A stretch of DNA of 31,127 nt from Neoechinorhynchus agilis (Eukaryota > Animalia > Acanthocephala), in the NCBI GenBank assembly GCA_051530055.1, contig JBMGUZ010000031.1, positions 1 to 31,127 of the forward strand. Reading direction: 5' to 3'. How positions within the stretch are numbered: the stretch's first letter is position 1; every line of letters begins with the position of its first letter. The notes under the pieces were generated by a model. It ran no database searches, was not told the DNA's origin, and was given only the letters and a program-made list of their open reading frames with translations. Of this stretch, positions 8 to 24,200 are shown in pieces. The position numbers and the translations under genes are program-made.

Positions 8-120
8 ATTCCCGTGGCGAGGCAGGCAAATACTTTTTCTAGGGCCTCGCAGCAAGCAAAAATAAATTCGCCATCGTTAAACCGGAGGGAGATCAGGAAT
101 CGCAGCTGAGGAGCGAAATG
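8..120 (+). mobile_element. Fragment of decayed CRE-type non-LTR retrotransposon (mirror of 23128-23235)
   Basis: ttcccgtggcgagg...ctcgcagc...gctgaggagcgaaa aligns to the FPWREGK...LAAS...AEGRK region of the intact CRE ORF at 16941-17065. Confidence 0.8.
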
Positions 121-3100
121 TTAATTCCGATCTCTAATGAACAACGGGAAATACAGAGTTTTTGTGTTTTCTTTCAAAAAATCAGATTCAGTTTCGTAAA
201 TTAACAAAGTTCAATTTTGGTAATTAATTAAAAAATATTAAATGCGATAGCGCTACAGAAATTAAATTTTATCTTGAATAGAAACGAGATTAAGACTTAA
301 TCCCAACAAACCAAAAATTTAATTCCGATCTCTAATGAACAACGGAAATCAGAGTTTTGTTTTCTTTCAAAAATCGATTCAGTTTCGTAAATTAACAAGC
401 AAAAAAAAAAAACAACCAAAAAACAACAATTGAATCGATCGCTTTTTCGTGGAAATCTTTTACAAAAATGTTAATTCCGATCTCTAATGAACAACGGGAA
501 ATACAGAGTTTTTGTGTTTTCTTTCAAAAAATCAGATTCAGTTTCGTAAAGTTAACAAAGTTCAATTTTGGTAATTAAATTAAAAAAATTATTAAAATGC
601 GATAGCGCTGACAGAAAATTGAAATTTATCTTAATCTTGAATAGAAATCGGAGATTAAGACTCTTTGAATCGATCGCTTTATTCCATTCGTGGAAATCTT
701 TTACAAAAATATTAATTCCGATCTCTAATGAACAACGGGAAATACAGAGTTTTTGTGTTTTCTTTCAAAAAATCAGATTCAGTTTCGTAAAATTAACAAA
801 GTTCAATTTTGGTAATTTAATTAAATGATTAATATGCAATAACGCTGACAGAAAAAAATTGAAATTTGTTGTTATCTTGAATAGAAATCGGAGATTAAGA
901 CTCTTTGAATCGATCGCTTTATTCCATTCGTGGAAATCTTTTACAAAAATGTTAATTCCGATCTCTAATGAACAACGGGAAATTCAGAGTTTTTTGTGTT
1001 TTCTTTCAAAAAATCAGATTCAGTTTCGTAAAGTTAACAAAGTTCACTTTTGGTAATTTAATTAAAAAATGATTAATATGCGATAGCGCTCTCAGGAAAT
1101 TAAAATTTGTCCTAATCTTGAACTTTGTGAATCGATCGCTTGATTTATTCGTGGAAATCTTTTACAAAAATGTTAATTGCGATCTCTAATGAACAACGGG
1201 AAATTCAGAGTTTTTTGTGTTTTCTTTCAAAAAATCAGATTCAGTTTCGTAAAGTTAACGAAGTTCACTTTTGGTAATTTAATTAAAAAAATGATTAATA
1301 TGCGATAGCGCTCTCAGGAAATTAAAATTTGTCCTAATCTTGATTTGATCATCATCATCCAAACCGCTTTTACTCTCTTCTCCGCTTGAGTTTACTTGAA
1401 CCAATACGTTCATTTTCTTTTGGCAAGATCTCTATTACGAGTTTTCTTTCAAAAAAATCAGATTCAGTTTCGTAAAGTTAACAAAGTTCAATTTTGGTAA
1501 TTTAATTAAATGATTAATATGCAATAACGCTGACAGAAAAAAATTGAAATTTGTTGTTATCTTGAATAGAAATCGGAGATTAAGACTCTTTGAATCGATC
1601 GCTTTATTCCATTCGTGGAAATCTTTAACAAAAATGTTAATTCCGATCTCTAATGAACAACGGGAAATACAGAGTTTTTGTGTTTTCTTTCAAAAATCAG
1701 ATTCAGTTTCGTAAAATTAACAAAGTTCAATTTTGGTAATTTAATTAAATGATTAATATGCAATAACGCTGACAGAAAAAATTGAAATTTGTTGTTATCT
1801 TGAATAGAAATCGGAGATTAAGACCTTTGAATCGATCGCTTTATTCCATTCGTGGAAATCTTTACAAAAATGTTAATTCCGATCTCTAATGAACAATATA
1901 AATTCAGATTTTTTGTGTTTTCTTTCAAAAAATCAGATTCAGTTTCGTAAAGTTAACAAAGTTCAATTTTGGTAATTTAATTATAAAATGATTAATATGC
2001 AATAACGCTGACAAGAAATTAAAATTTGTCCTAATCTTGAATAGAAATCGGAGATTAAGACTCTTTGAATCGATCGCTTTATTCCATTCGTGGAAATCTT
2101 TTACAAAAATATTAATTCCGATCTCTAATGAACAACGGGAAATACAGAGTTTTTGTGTTTTCTTTCAAAAAATCAGATTCAGTTTCGTAAAATTAACAAA
2201 GTTCAATTTTGGTAATTAAATTAAAAAAATTATTAAAATGCGATAGCGCTGACAGAAAATTGAAATTTATCTTAATCTTGAATAGAAATCGGAGATTAAG
2301 ACTCTTGAATCGATCGCTTTATTCCATTCGTGGAAATCTTTTAAAAAAATATTAATTCCGATCTCTAATGAACAACGGGAAATACAGAGTTTTTGTGTTT
2401 TCTTTCAAAAAATCAGATTCAGTTTCAAAATTAACAAAGTTCAATTTTGGTAATTTAATTAAATTAATAATATGCAATAACGCTGAAAAATTGAAATTTG
2501 TTGTTATCTTGAATAGAAATCGGAGATTAAGACTTTTGAATCGATCGCTTTATTCCATTCGTGGAAATCTTTTACAAAAATGTTAATTGCGATCTCTAAT
2601 GAACAACGGGAAATTCAGAGTTTTTTGTGTTTTCTTTCAAAAAATCAGATTCAGTTTCGTAAAGTTAACGAAGTTCACTTTTGGTAATTTAATTAAAAAA
2701 ATGATTAATATGCGATAGCGCTCTCAGGAAATTAAAATTTGTCCTAATCTTGAACTTTGTGAATCGATCGCTTGATTTGATTCGTGGAAATCTTTTACAA
2801 AAATGTTAATTCCGATCTCTAATGAACAACGGGAAATACAAAGTTTTTTATGTTTTCTTTCAAAAAATCAGATTCAGTTTCGTAAAGTTAACAAAGTTCA
2901 ATTTTGGTAATTTAATTAAATGATTAATATGCAATAACGCTGACAGAAAAAAATTGAAATTTGTTGTTATCTTGAATAGAAATCGGAGATTAAGACTCTT
3001 TGAATCGATCGCTTTATTCCATTCGTGGAAATCTTTTACAAAAATGTTAATTCCGATCTCTAATGAACAACGGCAAATTCAGAGTTTTTGTGTTTTCTTT

Positions 3101-4670
3101 CAAAAAATCAGATTCAGTTTCGTAAAGTTAACAAAGTTCAATTTTGGTAATTTAATTATAAAATGATTAATATGCAATAACGCTGACAAGAAATTAAAAT
3201 TTGTCCTAATCTTGAATAGAAATCGGAGATTAAGACTCTTTGAATCGATCGCTTTATTCCATTCGTGGAAATCTTTTACAAAAATATTAATTCCGATCTC
3301 TAATGAACAACGGGAAATACAGAGTTTTTGTGTTTTCTTTCAAAAAATCAGATTCAGTTTCGTAAAATTAACAAAGTTCAATTTTGGTAATTTAATTAAA
3401 AAATGATTAATATGCGATAGCGCTGACAGGAAATTAAAATTTGTCCTAATCTTGAATAGAAATCGAAGATTAAGACTCTGTGAATCGATCGCTTTATTCC
3501 ATTCGTGGAAATCTTTTACAAAAATGTTAATTCCGATCTCTAATGAACAACGAGAAATACAGAGTTTTTGTGTTTTCTTTCAAAAAATCAGATTCGGTTT
3601 CGTAAAGTTAACAAAGTGCAACTTTGGTAATTTAATTAAAAAAATGATTAATATGCGATAGCGCTGACAGGAAATTAAAATTTGTCGTAATCTTGAATAG
3701 AAATCGGAGATTAAGACTCTTTGAATCGATCGCTTTATTCAATTCGTGGAAATCTTTTCCAAAAATATTAATTCCGATCTCTAATGAACAACGGGAAATA
3801 CAGAGTTTTTGTGTTTTCTTTCAAAAAATCAGATTTCAGTTTCGTAAAATTAACAAAGTTCAATTTTGGTAATTTAATTAAATGATTAATATGCAATAAC
3901 GCTGACAGAAAAAAATTGAAATTTGTTGTTATCTTGAATAGAAATCGGAGATTAAGACTCTTTGAATCGATCGCCTTATTCCATTCGTGGAAATCTTTTA
4001 CAAAAATGTTAATTCCGATCTCTAATGAACAACGGGAAATTCAGAGTTTTTTGTGTTTTCTTTCAAAAAATCAGATTCAGTTTCGTAAAGTTAACAAAGT
4101 TCACTTTTGGTAATTTAATTAAAAAAATGATTAATATGCGATAGCGCTCTCAGGAAATTAAAATTTGTCCTAATCTTGAACTTTGTGAATCGATCGCTTG
4201 ATTTTATTCGTGGAAATCTTTTACAAAAATGTAAATTCCGATCTCTAATGAACAACGGGAAATACAAAGTTTTTTATGTTTTCTTTCAAAAAATCAGATT
4301 CAGTTTCGTAAAGTTAACAAAGTTCAATTTTGGTAATTTAATTAAAAAATGATTAATATGCTATGACGCTGACAGAAAATTAAAATTGGTCCTAATCTTG
4401 AATAGAAATCTTAGATTAAGACTAACTGAATCGATCGCTTTTTTCCATTCGTGGAAATCTTTTACAAAAATGTTAATTCCGATCTCTAATGAACAACGGG
4501 AAATACAAAGTTTTTTTTTCTTTCAAAAAATCAGATTTTGTTTCGTATAGTTAACAAAGTTCAACTTTGGTGCTCAATAAAAACTGATTAATATGCAAAT
4601 CTTTTTTTATCGTATTGCTAATTTCTGGCGTTGAAAAATTGAAATTTGTCCGAATTTTCATTTGAAAACT
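116..4670 (+). repeat. Tandem satellite, ~240-bp monomer, about 19-20 copies, several sequence variants
   Basis: Recurrent ttaattccgatctctaatgaacaacgggaaa...gaatcgatcgct...ttcgtggaaatc at ~220-243-bp spacing. The innermost unit (4590-4670) is degenerate. Confidence 0.99.
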
Positions 4671-5237
4671 CACAGTAAACATCGACAAATCCTCTGTATA
4701 GAATTAACTAAAAACAAAAACTACTAACAAATTGTTTGATTTTGTGTTTAAACAAAAAGCGTCTATTGAAACATTCAAAATAAAGAAGAAATGCTTTAGT
4801 TTAAAACACGTTGTCTTTTGTCCTAAAGTCAGTTCGACTATTACCAACGGTGGCAATAAAAGACATTTTGTTTAATGCTTTTATACTCGTAGTCTAAATA
4901 GTGGACATGATTCGCTGGGTCTAAGCAACGCTTTCACCATAAAACACAGAAGCGACCTAAAAATACGCTGTATGCCGTTTGTGGGATTTTTTTCATTATT
5001 ATCGGCATAATACAAAAACATGGAGGAATTTCGCACAAAAAAACATTCATAGATTCTGGCGATCACCAATTTTTCATATCGTAGTCACTGAAAACCTACA
5101 TCAATATGTAATCAAAAACTTTTTCTTTTTTAGTGAAACAAAACTGAGATAAATTCTAAAAAAAGAAGGTTGCATGCCATCGAATTGGCGTTCAATTGAC
5201 GCTTAAAAATAATGTCAAATTTTTTGCCGTCCTCCTC

Positions 5238-6068
5238 TCGAGATCTTTTGAATAAGTTTTATTTATTGTAATGACAAAAAGAAAATCTTAATTTCCGTGT
5301 GCTTTCGCTGTCTTACGACTTCCTAAGGAATTTCTTGAAAGTTTTCTAACATCCTGAGCAATTGAGAAAATGAAAATATTTCAAAATTCATCGATAGAGA
5401 AAATCCTTCGGGTTAGTCAAAGTATCATTTGGGTGAAAATACTCCCAGATATTTAGAAGGAGGTAACCTTGCCTCCGCCATTTATCGATTTATTTGGTGA
5501 AATACGTTAATGTCATCGATGTCTGACTCAAGCAGATAAATAAAGATTATGAATTTAGGGTTGCTAATTTTCTTTATAAGTTGTAGCAATCAATATCTTC
5601 CCGATCCTAGGGGAGGAATTTCTATCATCCCGTAGAATTTGGTCTTAAGCTCGGATCCAACAAAAGATTTATTCTTTTCCAAAACGTTTCACAATAGCCT
5701 AATTTCTGGTCGCTTTTAGTTTTCATTTTATTCTGAAGTCCACAATGGATGATTTTCAAATACTACAAAAATTAGACATATTGTTTAGACAATCTTAGAA
5801 GCAACGAAATAAACATGTGAGAAATCGGTATAGCAAATGGGTTAGGGTGCCAAAAAGAGAAGTATAGCAATAACACTTCGGTAAAGTGTTTCTTGCAGTT
5901 CGGATTTCCGATTATACACATCTCAGCCACCAGTTTCGGGATCCCTTTTAGAACAATCGTGACTACAAAGGATAAAAAAATTGATTTTTTAAGGAAAAAC
6001 GTTTGTAAGACCAATAATTGAAATTTGTTTTCGGTATAATGTAACAATTTTTTTGTTAAAACATAGAT
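5238..6068 (-). mobile_element. Decayed Penelope-like (possibly Neptune-type) 3' fragment within left arm
   Basis: Mirror of 18240-19070. Remnants GNPNCK and (S)HVYFV...KQYV resemble the Cys linker and GIY-YIG start, and the fragment ends in a degenerate HHR plus aataaataaa. Confidence 0.45.
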
Positions 6069-6413
6069 TGAACATTAAATTGTTTATGGCATAAAAATTA
6101 AACCGTTTTAAGATTGAATTGTTTATATTGGTTGTTTTATGGCGTAGAAATCAAATGATAATTTTATTTTTAAACTGCAGATTATTTACAGGGGCACAAT
6201 CTTGTACGCCCTTTCATCTGAACTTTCTTTTTTGTTTCATTGGTTGTTCACTTGCAAACTTGTCTTTTTTAGTGTTAAAACTTGTCAGTTAGCAAACAAT
6301 TTCATTAGGTCGACATCGTGGCTTTTCCAATTTGATCATCGATTTGTTTAATAACAAAAGTGGTTGTTTTATTGGGAAGAAAATGATTTTAAAACAACGT
6401 TGACAAAAGACGT

Positions 6414-6640
6414 GTGATTGATCCGACGCTTTTTTCATTTATTAAGCGTTAAATCTATGGAAAAAATTAATTGTTATTTTTTGGCATAAAGCGAACCCGC
6501 AAAAAAATGCTAAATATAATTTTGGACTTTATTGAATTATTATGTGATCGATCCGACGCTTTTTTTCATTCTTTATTAAGCGTTAAATCTATGGAAAAAT
6601 TAATCTTAATTTTTTGGCATAAAGCGAATCCGCAAAAAAA
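6414..6640 (+). repeat. ~130-bp tandem repeat, about 1.8 copies (about 2.5 copies in right arm, 16474-17570, split by CRE)
   Basis: gtgat(t/c)gatccgacgcttttttcatt...aagcgttaaatctatggaaaaa...ggcataaagcgaa repeated at 6414 and 6544. Confidence 0.9.
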
Positions 6641-6680
6641 CAACCTTTAAAATGAGTTTGTGACTTTTAGTTTTCTTTAG

Positions 6681-7284
6681 ATGGGCACGGAAAAACCGGA
6701 ATGGCCTAACCTACTGATTCATATGGGTGTATTTCTCTTTCTTTTTTCTGAATCATTAGACTAAACCGTTCAAACAAAGTCTTTTGGCATCAATCATAGA
6801 ATATAGTCCTGTGACCGCCCGTAGACCCATTTGTAATGTTCTCATAAAAGAGACAATTGAGAGCTTTACCGGCAAAAATGTGCCGATGAGTATTTTAAAA
6901 CAAAGCATCAGCTCGTTCAAACATGGATTAAAAATCACGGAGTCTCGGCGTACAGTAAAATATGTCGTGGATTCGGAAGGACGTGTTATTCCTAAGGAGA
7001 TCGAGTACAAAGCAAAGATGGCTGAATTGAATGTAAAAAACGATCGACAATTTCGATTAAATAACTTAAATGATGAGATTGATGAACGTCTCGAAAATAT
7101 GCCCAGCAGTGCAATGCAACAAGCTCTTAAATTACATGATTCACTGTTGAAAAAACCAGCGAACAATACCTGCGACTCATTGATTCTAGGGACGAAGACC
7201 AGCGATAATCTTTATCAACCGAATGTCGCTTCGAAAAAAGAGTTCGAAGATCTATTGAATCAATCAAACCAAAAGATCAACTGA
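6681..7284 (+). CDS. Unknown protein; 166-aa ORF with TTG start, or ~190-aa spliced model (exon 6681-6728, intron 6729-6759, exon 6760-7284)
   Basis: Open for 166 codons in both arms. The upstream in-frame stop is the TAG of a pyrimidine-rich acceptor. Removing a 31-nt GT..AG intron joins ATG 6681 in frame (MGTEKPEWPNLLIHMG/TKPFKQSLLASIIEY). No domain recognised. Confidence 0.4.
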
Positions 7285-7580
7285 AACAGTAACGGCAAAG
7301 AAAAATCGTCGATAGTAAAAAAATCGCTTATCTAGACGGAGATCTCAACGTGTAAAAATAAAAACAACTTTCCAAACTGAATTTGAAATACCAGCACAAA
7401 ATCATTTCTCGGCGTACCTGGTCAATGGTATCGTTCAAAGTTTTAAAAAATCCATCTTTGTAAACATTTAATTTTTGAACAGCGATTATTATTATTATTT
7501 CACGCCTCATACAACATACACACAATCAATCTCTTAATTCCTCTTTCTTGCTTGATCTAATATGTCTCGGGCCCAAGATG

Positions 7581-7620
7581 GCTGTGAGTTGTGGGACGAT
7601 CTCTTAAATCCCCTCACAGC
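7581..7620 (-). other. 3'-UTR stem-loop of LINE-A
   Basis: gctgtgag(ttgt)ggga-cgatctcttaaa-tccc-ctcacagc: an 8-bp plus 4-bp stem about 80 nt upstream of the (TAA)n tail. Confidence 0.65.
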
Positions 7621-7646
7621 AGCCTCGAAAACCCTTCTTTTAATTC

Positions 7647-10150
7647 TTAAGTAATAATAATCCTTTTCTTGTCCTGATCCTGTAAAAAAGAGAATAACAT
7701 GAGAAAATCACTTACCTCATTCCTGTTAAGTATATTAGTTTGATTAATGGGTAAAAAACTGGATGGTTTATTGAAAAAGATTCTAAGAATTGAGGAGTTG
7801 TAATTAAAATATTTACAGCTAGAATAATAATAAGAATAAAACCAAATTTTAGACAAAAAAATTCTTGTTAAAAAGGAAAAAAGGGGTTCCGTATCAATAT
7901 TATTTTTAATAAGAATACTGCTAAGCTTATTCAGCATAGTAAGATAAAATGATAGTCTGTTTTCTGGGGGCCGGCTTCGTGCGAAAAAGCATATTGAACC
8001 CCCTAGAAATATTTTTAACACTTTAGAAATAAAAGGTGGGGAAATTGATAACCTTTTCGCTCTTTTGATAAAAATATCTGTTTTTGTCAGAAGACTTTTA
8101 AAGGAAGAGTTTATAAAAATTCTATGATTTTTACAGGGGAAATCAACACCTAAACTCTTGGAATGCGATCTAAAATTGATATTAGGGAAATTGAAATTAG
8201 AAGATAATTCATTAATTAGAAGCTTCCTCGAAGCCAAAGTTTTAGTCAGTGGAATAAAGAAAGTTTTGTTATTGTTTGTAACTAAATTGGCTTTCCTAAG
8301 TTCCGACGACAAAGATTGCATAAAATTGGCTATATTATTCGTTAGAATAGAAGATGTTCTAGCTTTACAAAATAAGAATATATCATCCGCATAAACTAAA
8401 AGAAATATGGAAGATGATTTCTTTAAATTTTTGAAAATATATATAAGGGCAATTAAAAATAAGGTGGGCGAGAGTGGAGATCCTTGAGGAACACCATATC
8501 TAGAGAAATTTAGTGTGAGAAGGGTCCACCTCATAGTAAAAGGACTTGGATTCCATAAGATAGTTGGTTTTGTAGATAAGATTAAGAGGAACTTTAAGAT
8601 TAACTAAAGCCTCATAAAGAAAGCCACGGTCCAAGGCATCAAAAGCCTTATTAATATCCAGCTGAATGAGAAGTTTTTGTACATTAATAGCTTCATTCAT
8701 AGAATTAAGAGAGGATAAAAGCGATGTGACACCTTTACCTCCAATGAAGCCATGGAAAAAGTCGGGGATTAGCTTTCTAAATACTAAAAAATCATACAGT
8801 TTCCCGTTCACCGCTCTTTCTAAGCAAGAGAAGATTGGGTTCTGTATGGAAATTACTCTGATGTGGGATGCGTTAAATATACGTCCTTTCGTTTTGGGAA
8901 TAAAAATTTTCTTAACAATATTTATGTTAAGTAGATCATTAAAATCAATTTTCGATAAACGAAATCTACTAAAAAAATAGATTTTACCTTATCAGAAATA
9001 GAACTAAAAATTATGGGTGAAGTGCCATTTATATTGTACGCTTTAGAGGGGTTAGATTTACAGGCCTTCAGAAAAACTTCAACTTCAAAATTCCACGAAA
9101 AGGACTTTTTATTAAAGATGGGAAGTGGAGGAGAAGAACATGCACTAAGAGTATGTGCCATCAAAATATACTCAATTGCTGTAGGATAAGATATAGACCC
9201 TATCCAGTTAGATGCTTTTGCCTTCCAACAGACCGGTCTTCTTTTCAAAATACAGGACCAAAAGTCCTTACCAAAGGATTTAAGAGAGATCAGCTTCTTT
9301 TTGTCCAACGAAACTTGATGATAAAACTTAGCTGTGTAAAATTTTTTCATAAGTTTTTAAGGGGAGCGTTACCATACAAGTCAGCTATAACAGCATTTTT
9401 ATAAAATATGTTGACTTCATGACAAACAGGAGGTCGCTTGATCACAGACTTAGTAATTAAATTTTTATGTACAGAGGATAAAATGGCATTGTTAAAGTCA
9501 GATAAGGAGGATGAAATGGAAGAGTTCATAAAAGAAAGGAGATTATTATTAAATTTTGAAAAGCTTTTAGGATTAAAAACGAAAGTGTCCTTAAGAGAGA
9601 TGCCATTAGATTTAAAAAGGATAATCTCTGTGACTGAAGTTGGGAAGCAGGATAAAATAAAATAGGAATTGACTTTTTAATAATTGCACCATCCAAGAAG
9701 GTATGTCTATTAGATTTAACATTATGAAAAGAAGGAAATTTGGGGAGCAAAAAATTGTGAAACTTAAAAAAGGGCCTAAAAGCATTTAAAAAATTACTAT
9801 TGAAGTCGCCTACGATAAAGTCAGAATTCCAGTAACGAAGGATATGCATAAAAGATTTAGTAAATATACCCACGTGTCTGGGTTGAATATACAAGTTGCA
9901 AAGGATAAGAGTAGGAGAGAAAAGGGATGAGGTTCCATATAAGGGATTATTAAAAGAAATAATTTGCATTGCAAAAGAAATATTTTTAGTTTGAAAGAGA
10001 AGTTTAGAAGAGTGAGATTTAAGAATAAATGTTTGAAGTAGAAAAGCCGGTTTCTTGAAAACACAGCTTGTTAACATAGTTATCAACTACACAAGGAGTA
10101 AGAAAGTTAGGAAAACTAGAAGCCCTAAAGGCATTATATGTGATGAAAGA
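7647..10150 (-). pseudogene. LINE-A ORF2 (APE endonuclease + reverse transcriptase), split over several frames
   Basis: ORF pieces 9526-10086, 8922-9350, 8500-8811 and 7647-8534 carry the APE and RT motifs in the correct order. No RNase H seen. Confidence 0.9.
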
Positions 10151-10182
10151 GAAAGGACAGTCCTTATAATTGGAACAAGTCA

Positions 10183-12852: not shown

Positions 12853-12994
12853 GTTTTGTTGAAAAGATAATTCATTGTTATTTGTCGATAGGAGAGATAA
12901 ATGAAATTAAGATTTTATTTTCAGCAGAGATAGTGGATCGAAATATAAAATAAATTCTTAATTTCATTTATCTCTCCTATCGACAAATAAAAAA
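12853..12994. mobile_element. 142-bp fold-back insertion, 12-bp TSD
   Basis: 44-bp inverted arms 12878-12921 and 12947-12990 (1 mismatch), TSD tcaaaatattac at 12841-12852 and 12995-13006. Excision restores the frame KEAFKVFQNITKGLEAIRNENKEL. Confidence 0.88.
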
Positions 12995-15828
12995 TCAAAA
13001 TATTACAAAAGGGCTTGAAGCTATTAGAAATGAGAATAAGGAATTGAAAAGTTCCTTAAAAAGCTTAATTAAAACCTTAAAAAGGTTACAATGGGAGGGG
13101 GCGACGTTGAAGGTCGAGGAGGCATTAAAAAGAGCTTTGCCTATTCCCAGCCTGGAAGATACCAAACCCGATTCGGGACCGACCAAGAAGGTATATGCAA
13201 ACAGATAGTGTTCGTTTTTTACATGTAATATTGGGTAATCCAGGAACTTAGATAAATTAGATAATGATTTGTTTGGTGGGTTTTTACAAGAAACAGGGAC
13301 CTTCCATCATTTGGCTTACCTATTTATGAATGTTCTTTAACTAAGCCAATCTACCCATCAAATAGTAAAAACTACTCCGGTGGTTTACAATCATTTTTGA
13401 GAAAAGATATTCAACCGAAAATGATCCGTGAAATTCATACGAATGAGCACGTTATTCAGATAATATCATCCCTGAATCCTTTTCTAAATAAGGAAGCTTA
13501 TTGCGGGCCCCTTAAAATAATTTGGGTGAATTTCTACCGCAATCCAAAGTGTAACATTAGAAAATCATTAGAGGCCATGAAAGAGCTCTTAGAAGTATGG
13601 AAGCCTGATGTCATGACTGGTGACTTCAATAATAATTACTTGAATGCCTATAGAAGCTTATTCTCATCTAACTATACCACCATTATCTCTCAAGAACCCT
13701 CGTTCCACAATTGGTCGCGAGGATTTCCCTTTTTTTTATAGATGGATCAATAGTAAGTAAAGATTTAAATGCTTTATTCACTTTGGAAATCCAAATGAGA
13801 ATGAGCTGGCGTCTGGGTCATGATGCTTCGTTCTTCACAAGCACTGGCCGAGTCTCTTAAAAAGCGTATAAAATTAACACCAAATCTATTTTGTATTTTT
13901 AATAAAATTTTACTGGAACGAATTAAGCAATTGTTAGCTGTGCTGCTTAGGTTCAGAGTTGATCTTAAAACAAACTAGAAACGCAGGCTTTAGGCGTCAA
14001 GATCACAATTTGGGATTTCTTATTAAATTAGAAATTGAAGCCAGAGAAAGCGGACATCACTCAATTGCCCAAGTATTTAAAAAAATACTTCTCTTCTATT
14101 GGAAGGAGATTAAAAAAGAGAGAAAAAATCTATTGAAATGTGCAGTTTCTCTAAAAAATGGTGGAATATAATTTTAAATAAGAAATTTGTGGGCTGGAAG
14201 TCCAAAGCAAGTTCATGGATTGGGTGCTCTTCCTATCCTGAAGCAGTTAAATCGATTTGAAACTACCATATGGGTGAAATCAGACCCGAGCCATATTTAA
14301 GACCAATTAATTTCAACGATAACTTGGAGGAGAGTGATTATTTTCCGATTTTATAAAGGCCTCGTTGGTGGGTCACTCATGGGCTCATAATACGTTCTCG
14401 CCTCCATCGGCAATATTTAAACTAATAAGCGAAGAGGTTAAGTCTGTGATGATTTTGAAAATATTTTTTTATTTAAGAATTTATCAAATAATGGAGATTA
14501 ATAAAGTCAAACGTATTTTGATTCCCAAAAATAATTGCAAAAAGATCACGCAGGTCAAGGAACTGGGGCCCATTTCCATTGAAAGAGCGATAGCATGGAA
14601 GCTCTTAGATTTCGTTCAAGATAATCATTTAATTCCGCCTCCACAGTCTGATTGAACAATTAGTTGAGTTATCTAGAGAAAGACAACGATATGTCAACGC
14701 GTTGCTACAATTCGACATATCGAAAGCATTCGATGAAATTGATCGCTCTTTTATCTCTAAGACTTTAAGATTTTTGAAAGTGCCTAAAAAAACTTATCGA
14801 CTATACTTTGAGCTTGATAAGGATAAGAGAATTTTCTATCCTGTTCATGGAGTCACCTTTATCACCAATCTTGTTTGTGGTAGCTATGTCTTTTTTATTC
14901 AAAAACTACAAGCTGAAAAATGGATCTGAAATTTTTGTTGACGCGGACGATATTTCCTTTTTTTATCAGAGGTTTCTGAGAAATATCCCAGAGGCAATTA
15001 AAAGTTGCTTGCAGAAAATTGGAAAACTACTGGGGAAAGCTCATCTGGATACAAATCTCCAAAAATGTCTTATTATCCCTAACAACCGGACCAGAGCAAC
15101 TAATCTTAGAACTTCAACACTTTTATCTAATTTTAGAGAGTTGCCGAAGGTTTCGAAAAATAGCAAGTTATTAGGACTTAAGGTCCCGTTATTTGGATAC
15201 CCGATTTACGACTTGGGAAGGACTCGAAATATGTTTTATAAAGCTAAACTCATATTGAAAAGGGGGAGGCGTTTAAGTCTAAATGATAAAATGGTGATAA
15301 ATATAATTAAAACCCTTATTTTTGGTACAATTTGCTTTTTTTATGAGAGGCAGACCACCAGAACAACGACTTATGATGTTTTTTAAAATCTTCCCGATTG
15401 TTAAAAAGATCAAGTTCTTATTAGCGGAATCAATTTGTAGCTGTAAATATAAATTCGCAAAACTTGTTTGAAATTCACACAATCAAATGTGCCTGCAACT
15501 AATGAAAGCAAAGTTCTATTCAACTAATTTTAAAGAAATTATAATCCGAGACTCTCCTAAGAAAAACCTTGATCATTTTTTAGAATCATTTGTATTCCCC
15601 TTCACAAACGGTGAGTTACCTTAACAGATCCTGTTCAAAAATTAAATGTTTACAAAGATGGATTTTTTAAAACTTTGAACGATACCATTGACCAGGTACG
15701 CTGAGAAATGATTTTGTGCTGGTATTTCAAATTCAGTTTGGAAAGTTGTTTTTATTTTTACACGTTGAGATCTCCGTCTAGATAAGCGATTTTTTTACTA
15801 TCGACGATTTTTCTTTGCCGTTACTGTT

Positions 15829-16432
15829 TCAGTTGATCTTTTGGTTTGATTGATTCAATAGATCTTCGAACTCTTTTTTCGAAGCGACATTCGGTTGATA
15901 AAGATTATCGCTGGTCTTCGTCCCTAGAATCAATGAGTCGCAGGTATTGTTCGCTGGTTTTTTCAACAGTGAATCATGTAATTTAAGAGCTTGTTGCATT
16001 GCACTGCTGGGCATATTTTCGAGACGTTCATCAATCTCATTATTTACGTTATTTAATCGAAATTGTCGATCGTTTTTTACGTTCAATTCAGCCATCTTTG
16101 CTTTGTACTCGATCTCCTTAGGAATAACACGTCCTTCCGAATCCACGACATATTTTACTGTACGCCGAGACTCCGTGATTTTTAATCCATGTTTGAACGA
16201 GCTGATGCTTTGTTTTAAAATACTCATCGGCACATTTTTGCCGGTAAAGCTCTCAATTGTCTCTTTTATGAGAACATTACAAATGGGTCTACGGGCGGTC
16301 ACAGGACTATATTCTATGATTGATGCCAAAAGACTTTGTTTGAACGGTTTAGTCTAATGATTCAGAAAAAAGAAAGAGAAATACACCCATATGAATCAGT
16401 GGGTTAGGCCATTCCGGTTTTTCCGTGCCCAT
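15829..16432 (-). CDS. Second copy of the unknown arm protein
   Basis: Mirror of 6681-7284. It differs by two residues (LND vs VNN), and the putative splice sites are retained. Confidence 0.4.
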
Positions 16433-17284
16433 CTAAAGAAAACTAAGTCACAAACTCATTTTAAAGGTTGTTTTTTTTGCGGATTCGCTTTATGCCAAAA
16501 AATTAAGATTAATTTTTTCCATAGAATCTGGGACGGACCTCTTGTCGCGAGAGCTCACAGCTCTCTTCTTTCAGGTTCTCGCGATGGGGTCGTCCGAGCT
16601 AGACTGTTGGCAGTTTCAACACGAGAATCTGGGGCGTGGTTGGAGGCTGTTCCTCTGGCATCTGTGGGAACTCTTCTTACTGACGAGGTAACGAGGATCG
16701 CAGTATCCTTAAGACTCGGTCTCCCGATATGCACGCCCCATCGCTGTCGATGTGGGTCTTTGGTTGATGCTTTCGGGCGACACGGTCTCGTCTGCAGAAG
16801 GTCAGCAGGAAGGTTTTCACGCCATTCTGAAATCAATAACGTAATTTCTCGGGCGTTGAGAACGGCGAACTTCCCGAACATCCTGGAACCCGCCCACCTC
16901 TGCAGACTAGACGGCCGTAGGCCCGATGGAATTTCAGTCTTCCCGTGGCGGGAGGGCAAATGCCTTCTCTGGGACGCCACGTGTGTGGACACCCTCGCAG
17001 CCAGCAACATCCCCTACTCCCTCGAAATCGCCGGTGGTGCCGCCAGTGCAGCGGAAGGGAGGAAGGTACGAAAATATATGCAGCTATCGAGGGCTCACTA
17101 TTTTGTCCCCTTTGGGGTAGAGACGTATGGAGCGCTCGGCAGCTCGGCACTCTCTCTCCTCAAGGATCTCTCGAAGAAATTGAGAGAGGCAACCGGAGAC
17201 TCAAGAGCAGGCTTATTTCTTCGACAAAATATCTCGCTGGCAGTACAACGGGGCAATGCTGCCAGCGTGATGGCGACGGTCTAG
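16391..17284 (+). CDS. Chimeric 297-aa ORF: ~45 arm-derived codons fused in frame to the CRE RLE nuclease domain
   Basis: The ATG at 16391 lies in arm sequence, and CRE homology starts at ~16526 (IWDGPLV). No stop or frameshift in the nuclease part. Confidence 0.6.
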   Translation: MNQWVRPFRFFRAHLKKTKSQTHFKGCFFCGFALCQKIKINFFHRIWDGPLVARAHSSLLSGSRDGVVRARLLAVSTRESGAWLEAVPLASVGTLLTDEVTRIAVSLRLGLPICTPHRCRCGSLVDAFGRHGLVCRRSAGRFSRHSEINNVISRALRTANFPNILEPAHLCRLDGRRPDGISVFPWREGKCLLWDATCVDTLAASNIPYSLEIAGGAASAAEGRKVRKYMQLSRAHYFVPFGVETYGALGSSALSLLKDLSKKLREATGDSRAGLFLRQNISLAVQRGNAASVMATV

Positions 17285-17372
17285 GAAGGACAAAAGCTGG
17301 AATTTGGTGGGAGGTGGTGAATGTAAAGAAAAGTAAACTTCAAAAAATAAACAATAATGTTACAAAAAAAAC
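16526..17372 (+). mobile_element. Young 5'-truncated CRE-clade non-LTR retrotransposon (restriction-like endonuclease end)
   Basis: GC-rich block absent from the left arm. Contains the CCHC finger HRCRCG...HGLVC, RH, RRPDG, WDATCVDTLA, AEGRKVRKY and QRGNAAS, then a ~90-nt 3' UTR with an A-rich end. About 4 bp (ttta) are lost at the site and there is no TSD. Confidence 0.92.
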
Positions 17373-17739
17373 ACGCTTAATAAATGAAAAAAGCGTCGGA
17401 TCGATCACATAATAATTCAATAAAGTCCAAAATTATATTTAGCATTTTTTCGCGGATTCGCTTTATGCCAAAAAATAACAATTAATTTTTTCCATAGATT
17501 TAACGCTTAATAAATGAAAAAAGCGTCGGATCGATCACATAATAATTCAATAAAGTCCAAAATTATATTTAACATCATAGAGAACCTTTAAAAATCGATA
17601 TGATATTAAAAGCGAGAACTGTTTTGATGAAATCTAATGAGGCACATTTACCACAATTCAAACTAATTTATTAAATGCTATTTTACAGTCAAAAAAAGAT
17701 TATTAAAAGTTTCTGTTTTTTAGGCATTTCTTGTGCGTT

Positions 17740-18240
17740 TTCATGTTTATGGCGTAAAAATTAAAGAAATTTTGGTTGCGCCTTCGAAAACAATCATTTT
17801 TTAATAAATTAATTTAAATTTTTATTGATTATTTTAAAGCGACGAAAATGATTTTATTTTTAAAACCCGACTGATTTCAGAGGCACAATCTTATACGTCT
17901 TTTGTCAACGTTGTTTTAAAATCATTTTCTTCCCAATAAAACAACCACTTTTGTTATTAAACAAATCGATGATCAAATTGGAAAAGCCACGATGTCGACC
18001 TAATGAAATTGTTTGCTAACTGACAAGTTTTAACACTAAAAAAGACAAGTTTGCAAGTGAACAACCAATGAAACAAAAAAGAAAGTTCAGATGAAAGGGC
18101 GTACAAGATTGTGCCCCTGTAAATAATCTGCAGTTTAAAAATAAAATTATCATTTGATTTCTACGCCATAAAACAACCAATATAAACAATTCAATCTTCA
18201 AACGGTTTAATTTTTATGCCATAAACAATTTAATGTTCAA
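17740..18240. mobile_element. Penelope-type inverted 3'-end pair with degenerate HHR (left arm keeps only 6068-6413)
   Basis: Plus copy: cagatga-aa-gggcg-tacaagattg-tgccc-ctgtaaa at 18088-18123, then ...ctacgccataaaacaacc. Minus copy: cgtataagattgtgcctctgaaatc at ~17873-17897, then aaataaaatcatttt...tacgccataaac. Confidence 0.5.
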
Positions 18241-19070
18241 TCTATGTTTTAACAAAAAAATTGTTACATTATACCGAAAACAAATTTCAATTATTGGTCT
18301 TACAAACGTTTTTCCTTAAAAAATCAATTTTTTTATCCTTTGTAGTCACGATTGTTCTAAAAGAGATCCCGAAACTGGTGGCTGAGATGTGTATAATCGG
18401 AAATCCGAACTGCAAGAAACACTTTACCGAAGCGTTATTGCTATACTTCTCTTTTTGGCACCCTAACCCATTTGCTATACCGATTTCTCACATGTTTATT
18501 TCGTTGCTTCTAAGATTGTCTAAACAATATGTCTAATTTTTGTAGTATTTGAAAATCATCCATTGTGGACTTCAGAATAAAATGAAAACTAAAAGCGACC
18601 AGAAATTAGGCTATTGTGAAACGTTTTGGAAAAGAATAAATCTTTTGTTGGATCCGAGCTTAAGACCAAATTCTACGGGATGATAGAAATTCCTCCCCTA
18701 GGATCGGGAAGATATTGATTGCTACAACTTATAAAGAAAATTAGCAACCCTAAATTCATAATCTTTATTTATCTGCTTGAGTCAGACATCGATGACATTA
18801 ACGTATTTCACCAAATAAATCGATAAATGGCGGAGGCAAGGTTACCTCCTTCTAAATATCTGGGAGTATTTTCACCCAAATGATACTTTGACTAACCCGA
18901 AGGATTTTCTCTATCGATGAATTTTGAAATATTTTCATTTTCTCAATTGCTCAGGATGTTAGAAAACTTTCAAGAAATTCCTTAGGAAGTCGTAAGACAG
19001 CGAAAGCACACGGAAATTAAGATTTTCTTTTTGTCATTACAATAAATAAAACTTATTCAAAAGATCTCGA
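18240..19070 (+). mobile_element. Decayed Penelope-like 3' fragment within right arm
   Basis: Same motifs as the left copy. HHR-like cttagga-agtcgtaagacagc-gaaagc at 18981-19007 closely resembles the motif at 27024-27050. Confidence 0.45.
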
Positions 19071-19639
19071 GAGGAGGACGGCAAAAAATTTGACATTATT
19101 TTTAAGCGTCAATTGAACGCCAATTCGATGGCATGCAACCTTCTTTTTTTAGAATTTATCTCAGTTTTGTTTCACTAAAAAAGAAAAAGTTTTTGATTGC
19201 ATATTGATGTAGGTTTTCAGTGACTACGATATGAAAAATTGGTGATCGCCAGAATCTATGAATGTTTTTTTGTGCGAAATTCCTCCATGTTTTTGTATTA
19301 TGCCGATAATAATGAAAAAAATCCCACAAACGGCATACAGCGTATTTTTAGGTCGCTTCTGTGTTTTATGGTGAAAGCGTTGCTTAGACCCAGCGAATCA
19401 TGTCCACTATTTAGACTACGAGTATAAAAGCATTAAACAAAATGTCTTTTATTGCCACCGTTGGTAATAGTCGAACTGATTTTAAGACAAAAGACAAAGT
19501 GTTTTAAACTAAAGCATTTCTTCTTTATTTTGAATGTTTCAATAGACGCTTTTTGTTTAAACACAAAATCAAACAATTTGTTAGTAGTTTTTGTTTTTAG
19601 TTAATTCTATACAGAGGATTTGTCGATGTTTACTGTGAG

Positions 19640-22600
19640 TTTTCAAATGAAGATTCGGACAAATTTCAATTTTTCAACGCCAGAAATTAGCAATACGATA
19701 AAAAAGATTCGCATATTAATCAGTTTTTATTGTGCACCAAAGTTGAACTTTGTTAACTATACGAAACAAAATCTGATTTTTTGAAAGAAAACACAAAAAA
19801 CTTTGTATTTCCCGTTGTTCATTAGAGATCGGAATTAACATTTTTGTAAAAGATTTCCACGAATGGAATAAAGCGATCGATTCAGTTAGTCTTAATCTAA
19901 GATTTCTATTCAAGATTAAGATAAATTTCAATTTTCTGTCAGCGCTATCGCATTTTAATAATTTTTTTAATTTAATTACCAAAATTGAACTTTGTTAACT
20001 TTACGAAACTGAATCTGATTTTTTGAAAGAAAACATAAAAAACTTTGTATTTCCCGTTGTTCATTAGAGATCGGAATTAACATTTTTGTAAAAGATTTCC
20101 ACGAATCAAATCAAGCGATCGATTCACAAAGTTCAAGATTAGGACAAATTTTAATTTCCTGAGAGCGCTATCGCATATTAATCATTTTTTTAATTAAATT
20201 ACCAAAAGTGAACTATGTTAACTTTACGAAACTGAATCTGATTTTTTGAAAGAAAACACAAGAAACTCTGAATTTCCCGTTGTTCATTAGAGATCGGAAT
20301 TAACATTTTTGTAAAAGATTTTCACGAATGGAATAAAGCGATCGATTCAAAGAGTCTTAATCTCCGATTTCTATTCAAGATAACAACAAATTTCAATTTT
20401 TTTTCTGTCAGCGTTATTGCATATTAATCATTTAATTAAATTACCAAAATTGAACTTTGTTAATTTTACGAAACTGAATCTGATTTTTTGAAAGAATATT
20501 TTTGGAAAAGATTTCCACGAATGGAATAAAGCGATCGATTCAAAGAGTCTTAATCTCCGATTTCTATTCAAGATTACGACAAATTTTAATTTCCTGTCAG
20601 CGCTATCGCATATTAATCATTTTTTTAATTAAATTACCAAAGTTGCGCTTTGTTAACTTTACGAAACTGAATCAGATTTTTTGAAAGAAAACACAAAAAC
20701 TCTGTATTTCCCGTTGTTCATTAGAGATCGGAATTAACATTTTTGTAAAAGATTTCCACGAATCAAATCAAGCGATCGATTCAAAGAGTCTTAATCTCCG
20801 ATTTCTATTCAAGATTAAGATAAATTTCAATTTTCTGTCAGCGCTATCGCATTTTAATAATTTTTTTAATTTAATTACCAAAATTGAACTTTGTTAACTT
20901 TACGAAACTGAATCTGATTTTTTGAAAGAAAACATAAAAAACTTTGTATTTCCCGTTGTTCATTAGAGATCGGAATTAACATTTTTGTAAAAGATTTCCA
21001 CGAATCAAATCAAGCGATCGATTCACAAAGTTCAAGATTAGGACAAATTTTAATTTCCTGAGAGCGCTATCGCATATTAATCATTTTTTTAATTAAATTA
21101 CCAAAAGTGAACTTTGTTAACTTTACGAAACTGAATCTGATTTTTTGAAAGAAAACACAAAAACTCTGAATTTCCCGTTGTTCATTAGAGATCGGAATTA
21201 ACATTTTTGTAAAAGATTTCCACGAATGGAATAAAGCGATCGATTCAAAGAGTCTTAATCTCCGATTTCTATTCAAGATAACAACAAATTTCAATTTTTT
21301 TCTGTCAGCGTTATTGCATATTAATCATTTAATTAAATTACCAAAATTGAACTTTGTTAATTTTACGAAACTGAATCTGATTTTTTGAAAGAAAACACAA
21401 AAACTCTGTATTTCCCGTTGTTCATTAGAGATCGGAATTAATATTTTTGTAAAAGATTTCCACGAATGGAATAAAGCGATCGATTCAAAGAGTCTTAATC
21501 TCCGATTTCTATTCAAGATTACGACAAATTTTAATTTCCTGTCAGCGCTATCGCATATTAATCATTTTTTTAATTAAATTACCAAAATTGAACTTTGTTA
21601 ACTTTACGAAACTGAATCTGATTTTTTGAAAGAAAACACAAAAACTCTGTATTTCCCGTTGTTCATTAGAGATCGGAATTAACATTTTTGTAAAAGATTT
21701 CCACGAATCAAATCAAGCGATCGATTCACAGAGTCTTAATCTTCGATTTCTATTCAAGATTAGGACAAATTTTAATTTCCTGCCAGCGCTATCGCATATT
21801 AATCATTTCTTAATTAAATTACCAAAATTGAACTTTGTTAATTTTACGAAACTGAATCTGATTTTTTGAAAGAAAACACAAAAAACTCTGTATTTCCCGT
21901 TGTTCATTAGAGATCGGAATTAACATTTTTGTAAAAGATTTCCACGAATGGAATCAAGCGATCGATTCACAGTCTTAATCTTCGATTTCTATTCAAGATT
22001 AGGACAAATTTTAATTTCCTGCCAGCGCTATCGCATATTAATCATTTCTTAATTAAATTACCAAAATTGAACTTTGTTAATTTTACGAAACTGAATCTGA
22101 TTTTTTGAAAGAAAACACAAAAACTCTGTATTTCCCGTTGTTCATTAGAGATCGGAATTAATATTTTTGGAAAAGATTTCCACGAATGGAATAAAGCGAT
22201 CGATTCAAAGTCTTAATCTCCGATTTCTATTCAAGATTACGACAAATTTTAATTTCCTGTCAGCGCTATCGCATATTAATCATTTTTTTAATTAAATTAC
22301 CAAAGTTGCGCTTTGTTAACTTTACGAAACTGAATCTGATTTTTTGAAAGAAAACACAAAAACTCTGTATTTCCCGTTGTTCATTAGAGATCGGAATTAA
22401 CATTTTTGTAAAAGATTTCCACGAATCAAATCAAGCGATCGATTCAAAGAGTCTTAATCTCCGATTTCTATTCAAGATTAAGATAAATTTCAATTTTCTG
22501 TCAGCGCTATCGCATTTTAATAATTTTTTTAATTTAATTACCAAAATTGAACTTTGTTAATTTTACGAAACTGAATCTGATTTTTTGAAAGAAAACACAA

Positions 22601-23127
22601 AAACTCTGTATTTCCCGTTGTTCATTAGAGATCGGAATTAATATTTTTGTAAAAGATTTCCACGAATGGAATCAAGCGATCGATTCACAGAGTCTTAATC
22701 TTCGATTTCTATTCAAGATTAGGACAAATTTTAATTTCCTGCCAGCGCTATCGCATATTAATCATTTCTTAATTAAATTACCAAAATTGAACTTTGTTAA
22801 TTTTACGAAACTGAATCTGATTTTTTGAAAGAAAACACAAAAACTCTGTATTTCCCGTTGTTCATTAGAGATCGGAATTAATATTTTTGTAAAAGATTTC
22901 CACGAATGGAATAAAGCGATCGATTCACAGAGTCTTAATCTTCGATTTCTATTCAAGATTAGGACAAATTTTAATTTCCTGTCAGCGCTATCGCATATTA
23001 ATCATTTTTTAATTAAATTACCAAAATTGAACTTTGTTAATTTTACGAAACTGAATCTGATTTTTTGAAAGAAAACACAAAAACTCTGTATTTCCCGTTG
23101 TTCATTAGAGATCGGAATTAACATTTT
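19640..23127 (-). repeat. Same ~240-bp satellite, inverted, about 15 copies
   Basis: Reverse-complement monomers (tttcccgttgttcattagagatcggaattaa) at the same spacing. Confidence 0.99.
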
Positions 23128-24200
23128 CGCTCCTCAGCTGTGGTTCCTGATCTCCCTCCGGTTTAACGATGGCGAATTTATTTTTGCTGGCTGCGAGGCC
23201 CCAGAAAAAGTATTTGCCTCCCTCGCCACGGGAATACTATGATACCGCCTGGTCTACGGCGGTCATCGAGTCGGCAAAGATTGCTCGGCCCTAGGATGTT
23301 GGGCGTTTTCACAGTATTCAGGGCACGGCTAAGGGAATTGCGTTCACTTCAGGGTGTCGTGAGTACCTCTCGTCTGATTGCCGACGGACGATTCCCGTGG
23401 CATCCCGATGGTTCCACAGTCGCTCCGCAACGGCAGCGATGGGATGTGCACATCGGTACCCCAAGTCTCAGGGACACTGCGGTCTTTACTGTCTCACCGG
23501 AGGGGACCGACAAAAGCGATTGGGATAGCTTGAAAATTTAATTGTTCATATAGGTTGTTTTCTGGCGTAGTAATCAAAATGATTTCAATTTCGACGTCAG
23601 AAAACAACCGATTCGGATAGCATTGAGCCAAGCACCCGATTATCTTGTAGAGACTGCCGCCAATCGAGTTCGGTTCACCAGTTCACGAGAATCTGAAATT
23701 AAAGAGTTATGAATTCTCGCTACCAGCCGCGAGTGTTAAACTGATTGTTTGCAACCATTGACGGGTACCTGCTCGCTGCCTGAATATCCACACCAAAGAT
23801 TAAGCGCCTCTACGAAATCTTCATCCAAAGTGTAATTCTCGCCAATAACGGAATTAATTATTTTGCGGATTGTTTCAAACGATCCCAAATAAGCTGAGAA
23901 ATATCGGCTGCTTTTCAGATACCCAAACCGCCGGGGACACAGGCAAAGACGCTTGACGCCATGCTTCGTCCGACAGCTGAGTATTTAAAATTCCCCGAGA
24001 GAGTCTTTCACCTTCTCGTCTAATTTTTCCAGCTTATCCTTATGTATAAAATAGGTGCTGTGCAAAGTTTATACATCAGTTTTGGAATGAAGAGGGTATT
24101 CTTGATCAGGAACAGATCCTCATGTGAAGATAATTCATCAACTCGTTCACACAGTACCCAAAGTTACGGTTGAAGATTGGCAATCTCTGCTTCCCTATTT
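23128..24200 (-). mobile_element. Old decayed CRE-clade retrotransposon, 3'-truncated at the satellite
   Basis: Minus-strand remnants LCERVDELSSHEDLFLIKNT, IPKLMY, AWRQASLPVSPGGLGI, RTRLAAVSTR.SGAWL, SLRLGVPMCTSHRCRCG and FPWR are collinear with CRE RT-thumb and RLE regions. Confidence 0.85.
23530..23608. mobile_element. 79-bp fold-back insertion into the old CRE, 13-bp TSD
   Basis: Arms ggttgttttctggcgt (23553-23568) and acgtcagaaaacaacc (23594-23609), TSD cgatt(g/c)ggatagc at 23517-23529 and 23609-23621. Excision rejoins the CRE coding sequence. Confidence 0.8.

Follow-up and report, generated by a model that had tools for sequence, protein, structure and literature searches.

Fold-back (snap-back) inverted duplications arise at short inverted repeats, and palindromes are stabilised by "centre-break". 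In the human Y palindromes P1-P8, the arms are kept identical by arm-to-arm gene conversion. In Drosophila, Foldback (FB) elements have inverted arms with tandem repeats, and the HeT-A/TART elements direct their LINE 3' ends toward chromosome-proximal sequence. As for LINEs at sites of DNA breakage, endonuclease-independent insertion at double-strand breaks was reported by Sen et al. 2007, who described extra non-LINE letters and structures unlike those of classical L1 insertions (PMC1920257), and Rodriguez-Martin et al. 2020 documented, in human tumours, L1-mediated fold-back inversions that bridge sister chromatids (PMC7058536).

The window analysed here, a 31,127-nt stretch of Neoechinorhynchus agilis DNA, contains two inverted copies, at 8-7482 and 23235-15631, which enclose two non-LTR elements, LINE-A on the minus strand and then LINE-B on the plus strand. 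The first-pass annotation had described arms of at least 7.5 kb, about 99% identical in their unique part, around a core of two reverse-transcriptase-bearing LINEs in this order and orientation, and both descriptions are borne out, with ~99.5% identity in the unique part and an RVT_1 domain in each LINE. We consider it probable that an inverted duplication, present at one locus and having arms of 7.5 kb or more, later received two non-LTR insertions of different families in its centre, independently of each other. The head-to-head LINE pair would then lie outside the symmetry, as later arrivals in the palindrome centre. On this reading the structure is an ordinary rearrangement with ordinary insertions, and neither a new composite element nor a fused chromosome end. 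The main value of the analysis is this clarification, namely that an apparent "two-age palindrome" is an inverted segmental duplication with LINE insertions, one of which is still polymorphic.

The locus shares with snap-back inverted duplications and centre-break the long inverted arms, a short asymmetric spacer with complementary ends and a later interruption of the centre. It differs in that the interruption is a 4-kb LINE and not a small deletion, in that the spacer ends are complementary at only 9 of 11 positions and in that the mode of formation is deduced. The features of the window that enter the argument are the following.

8-115: left outermost part, a GC-rich LINE scrap ("LINE-C-like"), mirrored at 23127-23235
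116-4598: left 241-bp satellite array, with degenerate units at 116-445 and ~17.6 regular copies at 446-4598
4603-7482: left arm, unique part, with an internal 134-bp repeat (6413-6680) and an ORF (6784-7284)
7477-7487: left copy of the LINE-A target-site duplication (TSD), GAACAGCGATT, straddling the end of arm homology (7482|7483)
7488-11544, minus strand: LINE-A, RVT_1 (Pfam), with a TAA-repeat 3' tail at 7488-7499; a defective copy
11545-11555: right copy of the LINE-A TSD, GAACAGCGATT
11551-11598: low-copy centre (X'), 48 nt, with a 26-nt loop between its terminal 11-mers
11599-11606: 8-nt filler TTTTGAAC at the LINE-B 5' junction, matching 7473-7480 directly and 15633-15640 in reverse complement
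11607-15630, plus strand: LINE-B, a non-LTR element, RVT_1 (Pfam); 11607 is the 5' limit of the family
15631-19705: right arm, unique part, broken by right-arm-only DNA at 16527-17372 (846 bp) and 17540-17895 (~356 bp)
16527-17372, plus strand: "LINE-C" fragment, GC-rich, 5'-truncated, ending 3' in an A-run; right arm only
19709-23127: right 241-bp satellite array, ~14 copies
23123-23726, minus strand: LINE-C-like element, cut by the satellite and unbroken across 23235

The arms and their copy number

Each arm combines 2.9 kb of unique DNA with the 241-bp satellite and a 108-nt LINE scrap. The unique parts match at 4603-6413 versus 19705-17895 and at 6588-7482 versus 16525-15631, with 13 substitutions over ~2,700 aligned bases when the indel zone is left out, and the inner limits of homology are exact, at 7482 and 15631. 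Two large indels and 23 substitutions distinguish the arms, and their spacer lacks symmetry; a fold-back read artefact was rejected for these reasons. The left arm runs to the edge of the window, with 7 nt remaining, so that its length is a lower bound. On the right side, a LINE-C-like element extending beyond 23235 is collinear with the outermost scrap, and because this element crosses 23235 unbroken, the right outer limit is not a breakpoint. The ORF at 6784-7284 has no relatives in Pfam or in the Atlas, so that the arms give no grounds for claiming a duplicated gene.

The outermost 108 nt (8-115 versus 23235-23127) contain 5 mismatches and 1 indel, a match of ~95%, to be compared with 99.5% in the inner part (Fisher P 4e-4). 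One model put forward in the first-pass annotation was a palindromic amplicon homogenised by conversion; its palindrome stands, and arm-to-arm gene conversion may have homogenised it. As in sex-chromosome palindromes, the inverted arms are kilobases long and of very high identity, more so inside than outside, and flank a non-duplicated spacer; unlike them, the N. agilis arms contain satellite DNA and arm-specific insertions, have no recognisable gene and undergo conversion only putatively. At site 6882, G is present in both arms of the window and C in 67-88% of the reads, which are unphased and come from pooled samples.

A WGS run of 1,523 M letters, divided by the published genome size of 46.2 Mb, gives a single-copy depth of ~33x. 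Depth over the unique arm sequence is 58-78, with a mean of 67, and because this is ~2x single-copy, the arms represent one locus per haploid genome and no mobile family. In our view it is extremely improbable that the locus is a giant, mobile element of the fold-back type carrying two RTs in its core, or that two LINE-capped subtelomeres have fused here. Such structures would account for long inverted arms with tandem repeats and for the fact that both LINE 3' sides face the arms, the first being reminiscent of Drosophila FB and the inward LINE 3' polarity of HeT-A/TART. However, two arm copies per haploid genome amount to a single locus, without element-like termini; the right outer limit falls inside the uninterrupted LINE-C-like element and not at an element terminus; telomeric repeats of the TTAGGG type are absent from the window, so that there is no telomeric context of the HeT-A/TART kind; and LINE-A, which has a TSD and an empty site (see below), does not belong to a unit and does not cap an end.

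The assembly combines ONT, HiFi and Illumina data from ~50 pooled worms with Hi-C scaffolding, and pooling together with error-prone long reads weighs against the reading that we favour. The right half (LINE-B and the inverted arm) might accordingly be a misjoin or a misplaced haplotype, an explanation that we judge very unlikely. Read-level analysis covered 6001-12000 and confirmed the left junction, LINE-A and the centre; the junction between LINE-B and the right arm (15630/15631) is known from the assembly alone, which also counts against the favoured reading. A 60-mer across this junction (15601-15660) matched no listed sequencing run, although only three words were sampled, and a contig from another sample (6610-7514), which crosses the arm/LINE-A junction, passes 7482 without the fork that would be expected if a second arm led into LINE-B at this point. 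Both observations are in line with an artefact, and the second is a further difficulty for an inverted duplication. On the other hand, arm depth is ~2x single-copy, yet the reads at the left-arm junction (LINE-A plus empty site) sum to only ~1x; indels and SNPs separate the arms, and sequence of the right-arm type after 6413 is present in a contig of an independent sample (X1; a loose end); the window contains no N; and one would not expect a chimera formed at random to join precisely at the base of the 48-nt centre.

The LINE-A insertion

LINE-A is bounded by an exact 11-mer, GAACAGCGATT, at 7477-7487 and 11545-11555. In three libraries of one sample (X2, X3 and X4), 14-16 reads per library join 7476 directly to 11545 with 11 shared letters, and because such empty-site reads occur in all three, LINE-A is a young and polymorphic insertion. 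Its removal leaves the order arm, 56 nt, LINE-B, arm. Letters private to the copy in the window are found in 17-25 reads, about half the single-copy depth, in agreement with the share of empty sites; LINE-A is thus missing from about half of the sampled chromosomes. Depth over LINE-A is ~430, compared with 67 on the arm, corresponding to ~13x single-copy and to a family of about 13 copies. Loose read ends place the limits of this family at 7485 and 11503: 238-294 reads per library end at 7485, where variable TAA-repeat tails are followed by diverse flanks, and the window copy has extra 5' letters at 11504-11544, including a 12-nt target copy (11533-11544). The TSD, the simple-repeat tail shared with other copies and the unoccupied allele show that LINE-A is a canonical target-primed insertion.

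Because it has an 11-bp TSD and an empty site, LINE-A entered continuous DNA and capped no end. Together with the absence of telomeric repeats, this largely refutes the earlier proposal of fused, LINE-capped subtelomeres. The proposal of a composite fold-back element fails as well, given the arm depth of ~2x, a LINE-A that is separate, TSD-flanked and absent from about half of the chromosomes, and LINE families that are copied elsewhere. The two LINEs had seemed to meet the arms at an identical nucleotide; this is only apparent, since arm homology ends inside the LINE-A TSD and the LINE-A tail starts 5 nt beyond.

LINE-B and the palindrome centre

We infer the 48-nt centre to be the original spacer of the palindrome; its first and last 11 nt can pair over 9 of their 11 positions (P ~0.003-0.009). 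Inverted symmetry resumes in this way to the left of LINE-B. When the 48-mer is folded, the terminal stem is the minimum-energy structure, but its energy is ordinary (z -0.14), and for the favoured reading both this and the modest significance of the complementarity are weak points.

Most likely, the short-spacer palindrome is the older structure and LINE-B inserted into its centre. In a first step, a palindrome with a short spacer, the 48-nt centre, would have formed, a product of the type expected from fold-back (snap-back) copying at a short inverted repeat. In a second step, LINE-B would have landed precisely between the centre and the right arm, without a TSD or an A-rich tail and with the 8-nt templated filler, either as a LINE cDNA captured during repair of a break in the palindrome centre or through an atypical target-primed event. 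In a third step, LINE-A would have landed 56 nt upstream of the LINE-B 5' end. Concerning LINE-B, a search for a TSD found no direct repeat of at least 7 nt abutting either end, with a few short repeats lying 30-60 nt off, and its 3' end, which terminates in ...TTAACAGATC, has no A-rich tail. In lacking a TSD and in having extra non-LINE letters at one junction, LINE-B resembles endonuclease-independent insertions; it differs in being known from the filled site alone, with no pre-insertion allele to show a target deletion or a break. LINE-B is decayed: its frame changes at least five times, and two small fold-back insertions (12313-12508 and 12875-12993) are nested in it. This is a point against its late arrival, as a LINE-B younger than the arms, which differ by 0.5%, must have been copied from an already dead template. 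Furthermore, a single central LINE could be there by chance.

Alternatively, formation of the palindrome and insertion of LINE-B might have been one event, in which LINE-B bridged the fold-back. In this scheme, which we hold to be unlikely, LINE-B cDNA would have been primed on one sister chromatid, at a nick following GAACAG, and joined in inverted orientation to the other chromatid 64 nt away, a second break or a template switch then bounding the copied arm. LINE-B does fill the spacer almost exactly, its 3' side abutting one arm and its 5' side lying 64 nt beyond the corresponding point of the other arm, without a TSD; the nicks that primed LINE-A and, by inference, LINE-B are on one strand and only 5 nt apart, suggesting an endonuclease-favoured site; and the tumour inversions cited above are a precedent, with a LINE likewise at the axis of an inverted duplication, joined to one arm by its 3' side and lacking a TSD. 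The N. agilis case is, however, a small germline structure, either fixed or segregating, and a palindrome that was already present fits the evidence better. The junction between LINE-B and the arm has neither an A-rich nor a TAA tail and the 3' region of LINE-B is short, the complementary ends of the 48-nt centre would have to be a coincidence, and the mobilised template would have been a decayed LINE-B with nested insertions.

The same decay, set against arms that differ by only 0.5%, could instead mean that LINE-B predates the duplication and occupies the spacer by chance, the palindrome being a recent fold-back or template-switch product that broke on the inside at 7482 and at 15630, the latter point lying within the LINE-B 3' UTR or where it ends. 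A breakpoint within the element would explain the tail missing at 15630, and the junction shows no microhomology. We nevertheless find this order of events very improbable, since the two breakpoints would have to lie close to the opposite ends of a single 4-kb element, within ~0-200 nt of one and 64 nt of the other, since the 8-nt filler and the inverted symmetry that resumes to the left of LINE-B would be unexplained and since a fold-back primed at the right end of the centre would have put a copy of LINE-B in the other arm. Two further routes to the arms were rejected: 3' transduction needs a source LINE-B beside the left arm, which is absent, and twin priming inverts adjacent RNA segments without producing a 7.5-kb duplication.

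Palindrome centres of N. agilis may conceivably be preferred sites for the landing or repair use of LINE cDNA, a LINE patching a break in the hairpin-prone centre of a fresh short-spacer palindrome and so stabilising it, or the LINE may itself have bridged the fold-back; we regard this pair of ideas as speculative and unlikely. If LINE patching or bridging were true, the L1-mediated fold-back inversions that have up to now been described in tumours only would have a counterpart in a germline, and if LINEs were enriched at palindrome centres genome-wide, retroelement activity would be tied to the formation or stabilisation of germline palindromes. In addition, the locus provides a worked example of how joints and loose ends at the read level tell the ends of elements from the breakpoints of duplications.

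The two LINE families

LINE-A and LINE-B are collinear, with 30-50% amino-acid identity and no detectable DNA similarity, in line with the first-pass description of two LINEs far more diverged than the arms. The two ages of symmetry deduced from it do not hold, LINE-A being young, TSD-flanked and polymorphic. Counted from the RxRPP motif common to both, which would fit a jockey-like lineage, the 3' region of LINE-B is ~200 nt shorter than that of LINE-A. In Pfam, the open pieces of neither LINE gave an endonuclease or ORF1 domain, and the reverse-transcriptase fragment of LINE-A had no match in the PDB and gave only generic RVT_1 clusters in the Atlas. No Rfam family reached its gathering score within the window; the two small fold-backs of LINE-B gave only sub-threshold matches to generic, miRNA-like hairpins, and no hammerhead. 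LINE-A itself has frameshifting indels at 8505, 8970, 9348 and 10858 and an internal deletion at 10039, and it shows that young insertions of already defective copies occur in the N. agilis genome.

Arms, flanks and copy number

Self-comparison of the window bore out the earlier description of a palindrome with inverted arms (left, 8-7482; right, 23235-15631). The unique parts of the arms pair in two blocks, and two further blocks are confined to the right arm.

Features of the arms and of the right flank
4603-6413 = 19705-17895, inverted: unique part, first paired block (self-comparison)
6588-7482 = 16525-15631, inverted: unique part, second paired block (self-comparison)
446-4598 and 19709-23127: 241-bp satellite, outside the unique part on both sides
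16527-17372: 5'-truncated GC-rich LINE fragment (LINE-C) with an A-run at its end, 846 bp, right arm only
17540-17895: second right-arm-only block, ~356 bp, adjoining a 134-bp internal repeat
23123-23726, minus strand: LINE-C-like element
24856-25040: 45-bp tandem repeat
28659-29141, minus strand: weak RVT_1 piece
29748-29918: similarity to the right-arm LINE fragment

Base-by-base alignment of the unique parts revealed 23 substitutions, 13 of which lie in ~2,700 cleanly aligned bases, an identity of ~99.5% where ~99% had been claimed. Arm homology stops exactly at 7482 and 15631 and includes the outermost 108 nt (8-115 versus 23235-23127), and identity declines outwards, being 99.5% for the inner unique sequence, ~98% for the inner satellite compared in register and ~95% for those 108 nt. 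Of the model of a palindrome kept homogeneous by arm-to-arm conversion, the palindrome stood, and conversion is possible. At site 6882/16231, both window arms carry G and 67-88% of the reads carry C, in pooled DNA and with possible CpG effects; the assembly represents a haplotype uncommon in the sequenced sample, or else a variant spread from arm to arm.

At the outer limit, the LINE-C-like element runs collinearly through 23235 as far as the satellite, so that the right arm, whose limit falls inside this element, is contiguous with its flank. The left arm, the limit of which coincides with the window edge, may be the copy. The right flank (23236-31127) is richer in GC and pieced together from LINE remains. 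The left satellite array opens with degenerate units (116-445), marked by numerous short deletions and, at ~400-430, by an A-rich tract, and the right array is devoid of them.

The published 46.2-Mb assembly was produced with MaSuRCA/Flye from ONT, HiFi and Illumina reads of ~50 pooled worms and one female, with Hi-C scaffolding (PMC12690905). Reads of one WGS library (1,523 M letters, ~33x for a 46.2-Mb genome) and two Hi-C libraries, together with contigs of another sample, were mapped on 6001-12000. The depth of the unique arm part (58-78x, mean 67) corresponds to two copies per haploid genome, so the arm does not belong to a family of dispersed repeats. A 906-nt contig of the independent sample spans the junction between the arm and LINE-A (6610-7514) and has right-arm letters where the arms differ, suggesting that several arm differences are haplotype-private polymorphisms. 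The 134-bp internal tandem repeat has unequal copy numbers in the two arms (6413-6680 versus 17373-17575), and this number is also polymorphic, since reads carry a joint that goes back 130 (6549 to 6420). Another joint, from 6535 to 11570, connects the internal repeat with the palindrome's 48-nt centre and omits 5,034 nt; it occurs in just 8 WGS reads and 4 reads of one Hi-C library and may represent a further structural allele.

LINE-A, a young insertion

The 8.1-kb core contains two non-LTR elements with RVT_1 matches in each, LINE-A on the minus strand (7488-11544) and LINE-B on the plus strand (11607-15630). They are indeed diverged relatives, as proposed, with ORF1 and ORF2 collinear at 30-50% amino-acid identity and no detectable DNA similarity between the two elements. 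The first-pass annotation took their head-to-head arrangement for an older layer of symmetry; it consists of two unrelated insertions.

The empty site of LINE-A is represented by 14-16 reads in each of three libraries; these pass from 7476 straight to 11545, and 11 letters fit both sides. The target-site duplication (TSD) is this 11-mer, GAACAGCGATT, at 7477-7487 and 11545-11555. The ends of the family are placed at 7485 and 11503 by reads from other LINE-A copies: at 7485, hundreds of them depart from the window sequence into variable-length TAA-repeat tails and then diverse flanks, and others break off at 11503. LINE-A depth is ~430x, equivalent to ~13 copies at 95% identity or above. Letters specific to the LINE-A copy in the window are found in 17-25 reads, which together with the empty-site reads amount to roughly one single-copy depth, so that LINE-A is present on about half of the sampled chromosomes. 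LINE-A is thus an ordinary, young insertion. The two LINEs had been thought to contact the arms at the identical nucleotide; in fact, 7482/7483 lies inside the TSD of LINE-A, 5 nt from its tail.

The TSD and the empty site refute, for LINE-A, the proposed fusion of two LINE-capped subtelomeres, and no telomeric repeats supporting that fusion were found. The other proposal, a composite fold-back element, is contradicted by the number of copies, by LINE-A being independent and polymorphic and by the right arm's outer limit, which is not a terminus.

The window's LINE-A is defective, differing from most copies by indels at 8505, 8970, 9348 and 10858, which implies that already dead copies do get inserted in this genome. 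At ~140 positions, reads carry another letter, mostly the family majority. About half of the reads over 10039 diverge on both sides with a near-uniform consensus; the internal deletion there is common to about half of the family, placing this copy in an internally deleted, multicopy subfamily and suggesting that a non-autonomous derivative is being mobilized. At the 5' junction, past the family's usual 5' end, ~29 additional letters accompany 12 nt (11533-11544; GCGATTGAATGC) copied from the target after the TSD (11550-11561). These 12 nt are templated filler, like 8 nt beside LINE-B.

LINE-B and the centre of the palindrome

Removal of LINE-A and one TSD copy leaves the left arm (ending GAACAG), 56 nt (11551-11606), LINE-B and the right arm. 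Matches of reads from other LINE-B copies break off at 11607, the depth of the LINE-B 5' part is ~110-180x, and the 56 nt are low copy by depth arithmetic of the 11401-11600 bin. The 3' region of LINE-B is ~200 nt shorter than that of LINE-A, counted from the common RxRPP motif, and its end (...TTAACAGATC) lacks an A-rich or TAA tail; a search for a direct repeat flanking LINE-B found none.

The 56 nt open with the centre (11551-11598, 48 nt), whose start, CGATTGAATGG, and end, CAATTCGATCG, are complementary to each other at 9 of 11 positions and enclose a 26-nt loop (chance of 0.003 versus shuffles and 0.009 versus 56-mers drawn at random from the window); folding of the 48-mer yields an ordinary energy. 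The last 8 nt, TTTTGAAC, copy 7473-7480 directly and correspond, in reverse complement, to right-arm bases 3-10. Taken at face value, the arms' inverted symmetry would resume beyond LINE-B, so that LINE-B and the 8-nt filler would interrupt an older palindrome whose spacer measured 26 to 48 nt.

Breaks are known to occur at palindrome centres. We propose that fold-back copying at a short imperfect inverted repeat would have generated arm, 48-nt centre and arm, and that LINE-B would then have landed at the base of the centre. LINE-B resembles endonuclease-independent L1 insertions, which patch double-strand breaks and have no TSD, no tail and extra junction letters (PMC1920257). The arms next gained private changes, and the canonical insertion of LINE-A, 56 nt upstream of the LINE-B 5' end, came last.

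A fold-back bridged by LINE-B itself, linking the inverted duplication as in human tumours (PMC7058536), would also account for the spacer being filled by LINE-B and for the distance of only 5 nt, on the same strand, between the inferred LINE-B nick and that of LINE-A, but it predicts a tail at the junction and leaves the complementarity of the centre unexplained. A LINE-B older than the duplication would explain its decay; this reading requires that the two breakpoints coincide with the two ends of a single element and does not account for the resumed symmetry. The right half may also be a misassembly, given that the LINE-B/right arm junction (15630/15631) is known from the assembly (the reads being mapped on 6001-12000), that a word index gave no run for a 60-mer across it, with three sampled words only, and that one contig of another sample runs past 7482 without a fork. 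Against this, arm depth is 2x, of which left-junction reads supply only ~1x, the arms have specific indels, one present in another sample too, and the join sits at the base of the centre. Overall, this looks like a real inverted duplication at a single locus, into which LINEs inserted in a nested fashion; the processes are known, the instance is new. That palindrome centres attract LINE cDNA, or are repaired by it, is the one reading of the locus worth pursuing.

LINE-B also harbours two small fold-back insertions (12313-12508 and 12875-12993), with arms of 85 and 47 nt and loops of 26 and 25 nt, respectively; their Rfam matches were all generic hairpins of sub-threshold score, and no hammerhead was among them. 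A 14-nt near-repeat (12279-12292 and 12507-12520) borders the first, whose loop is of the same size as that inferred for the palindrome centre.
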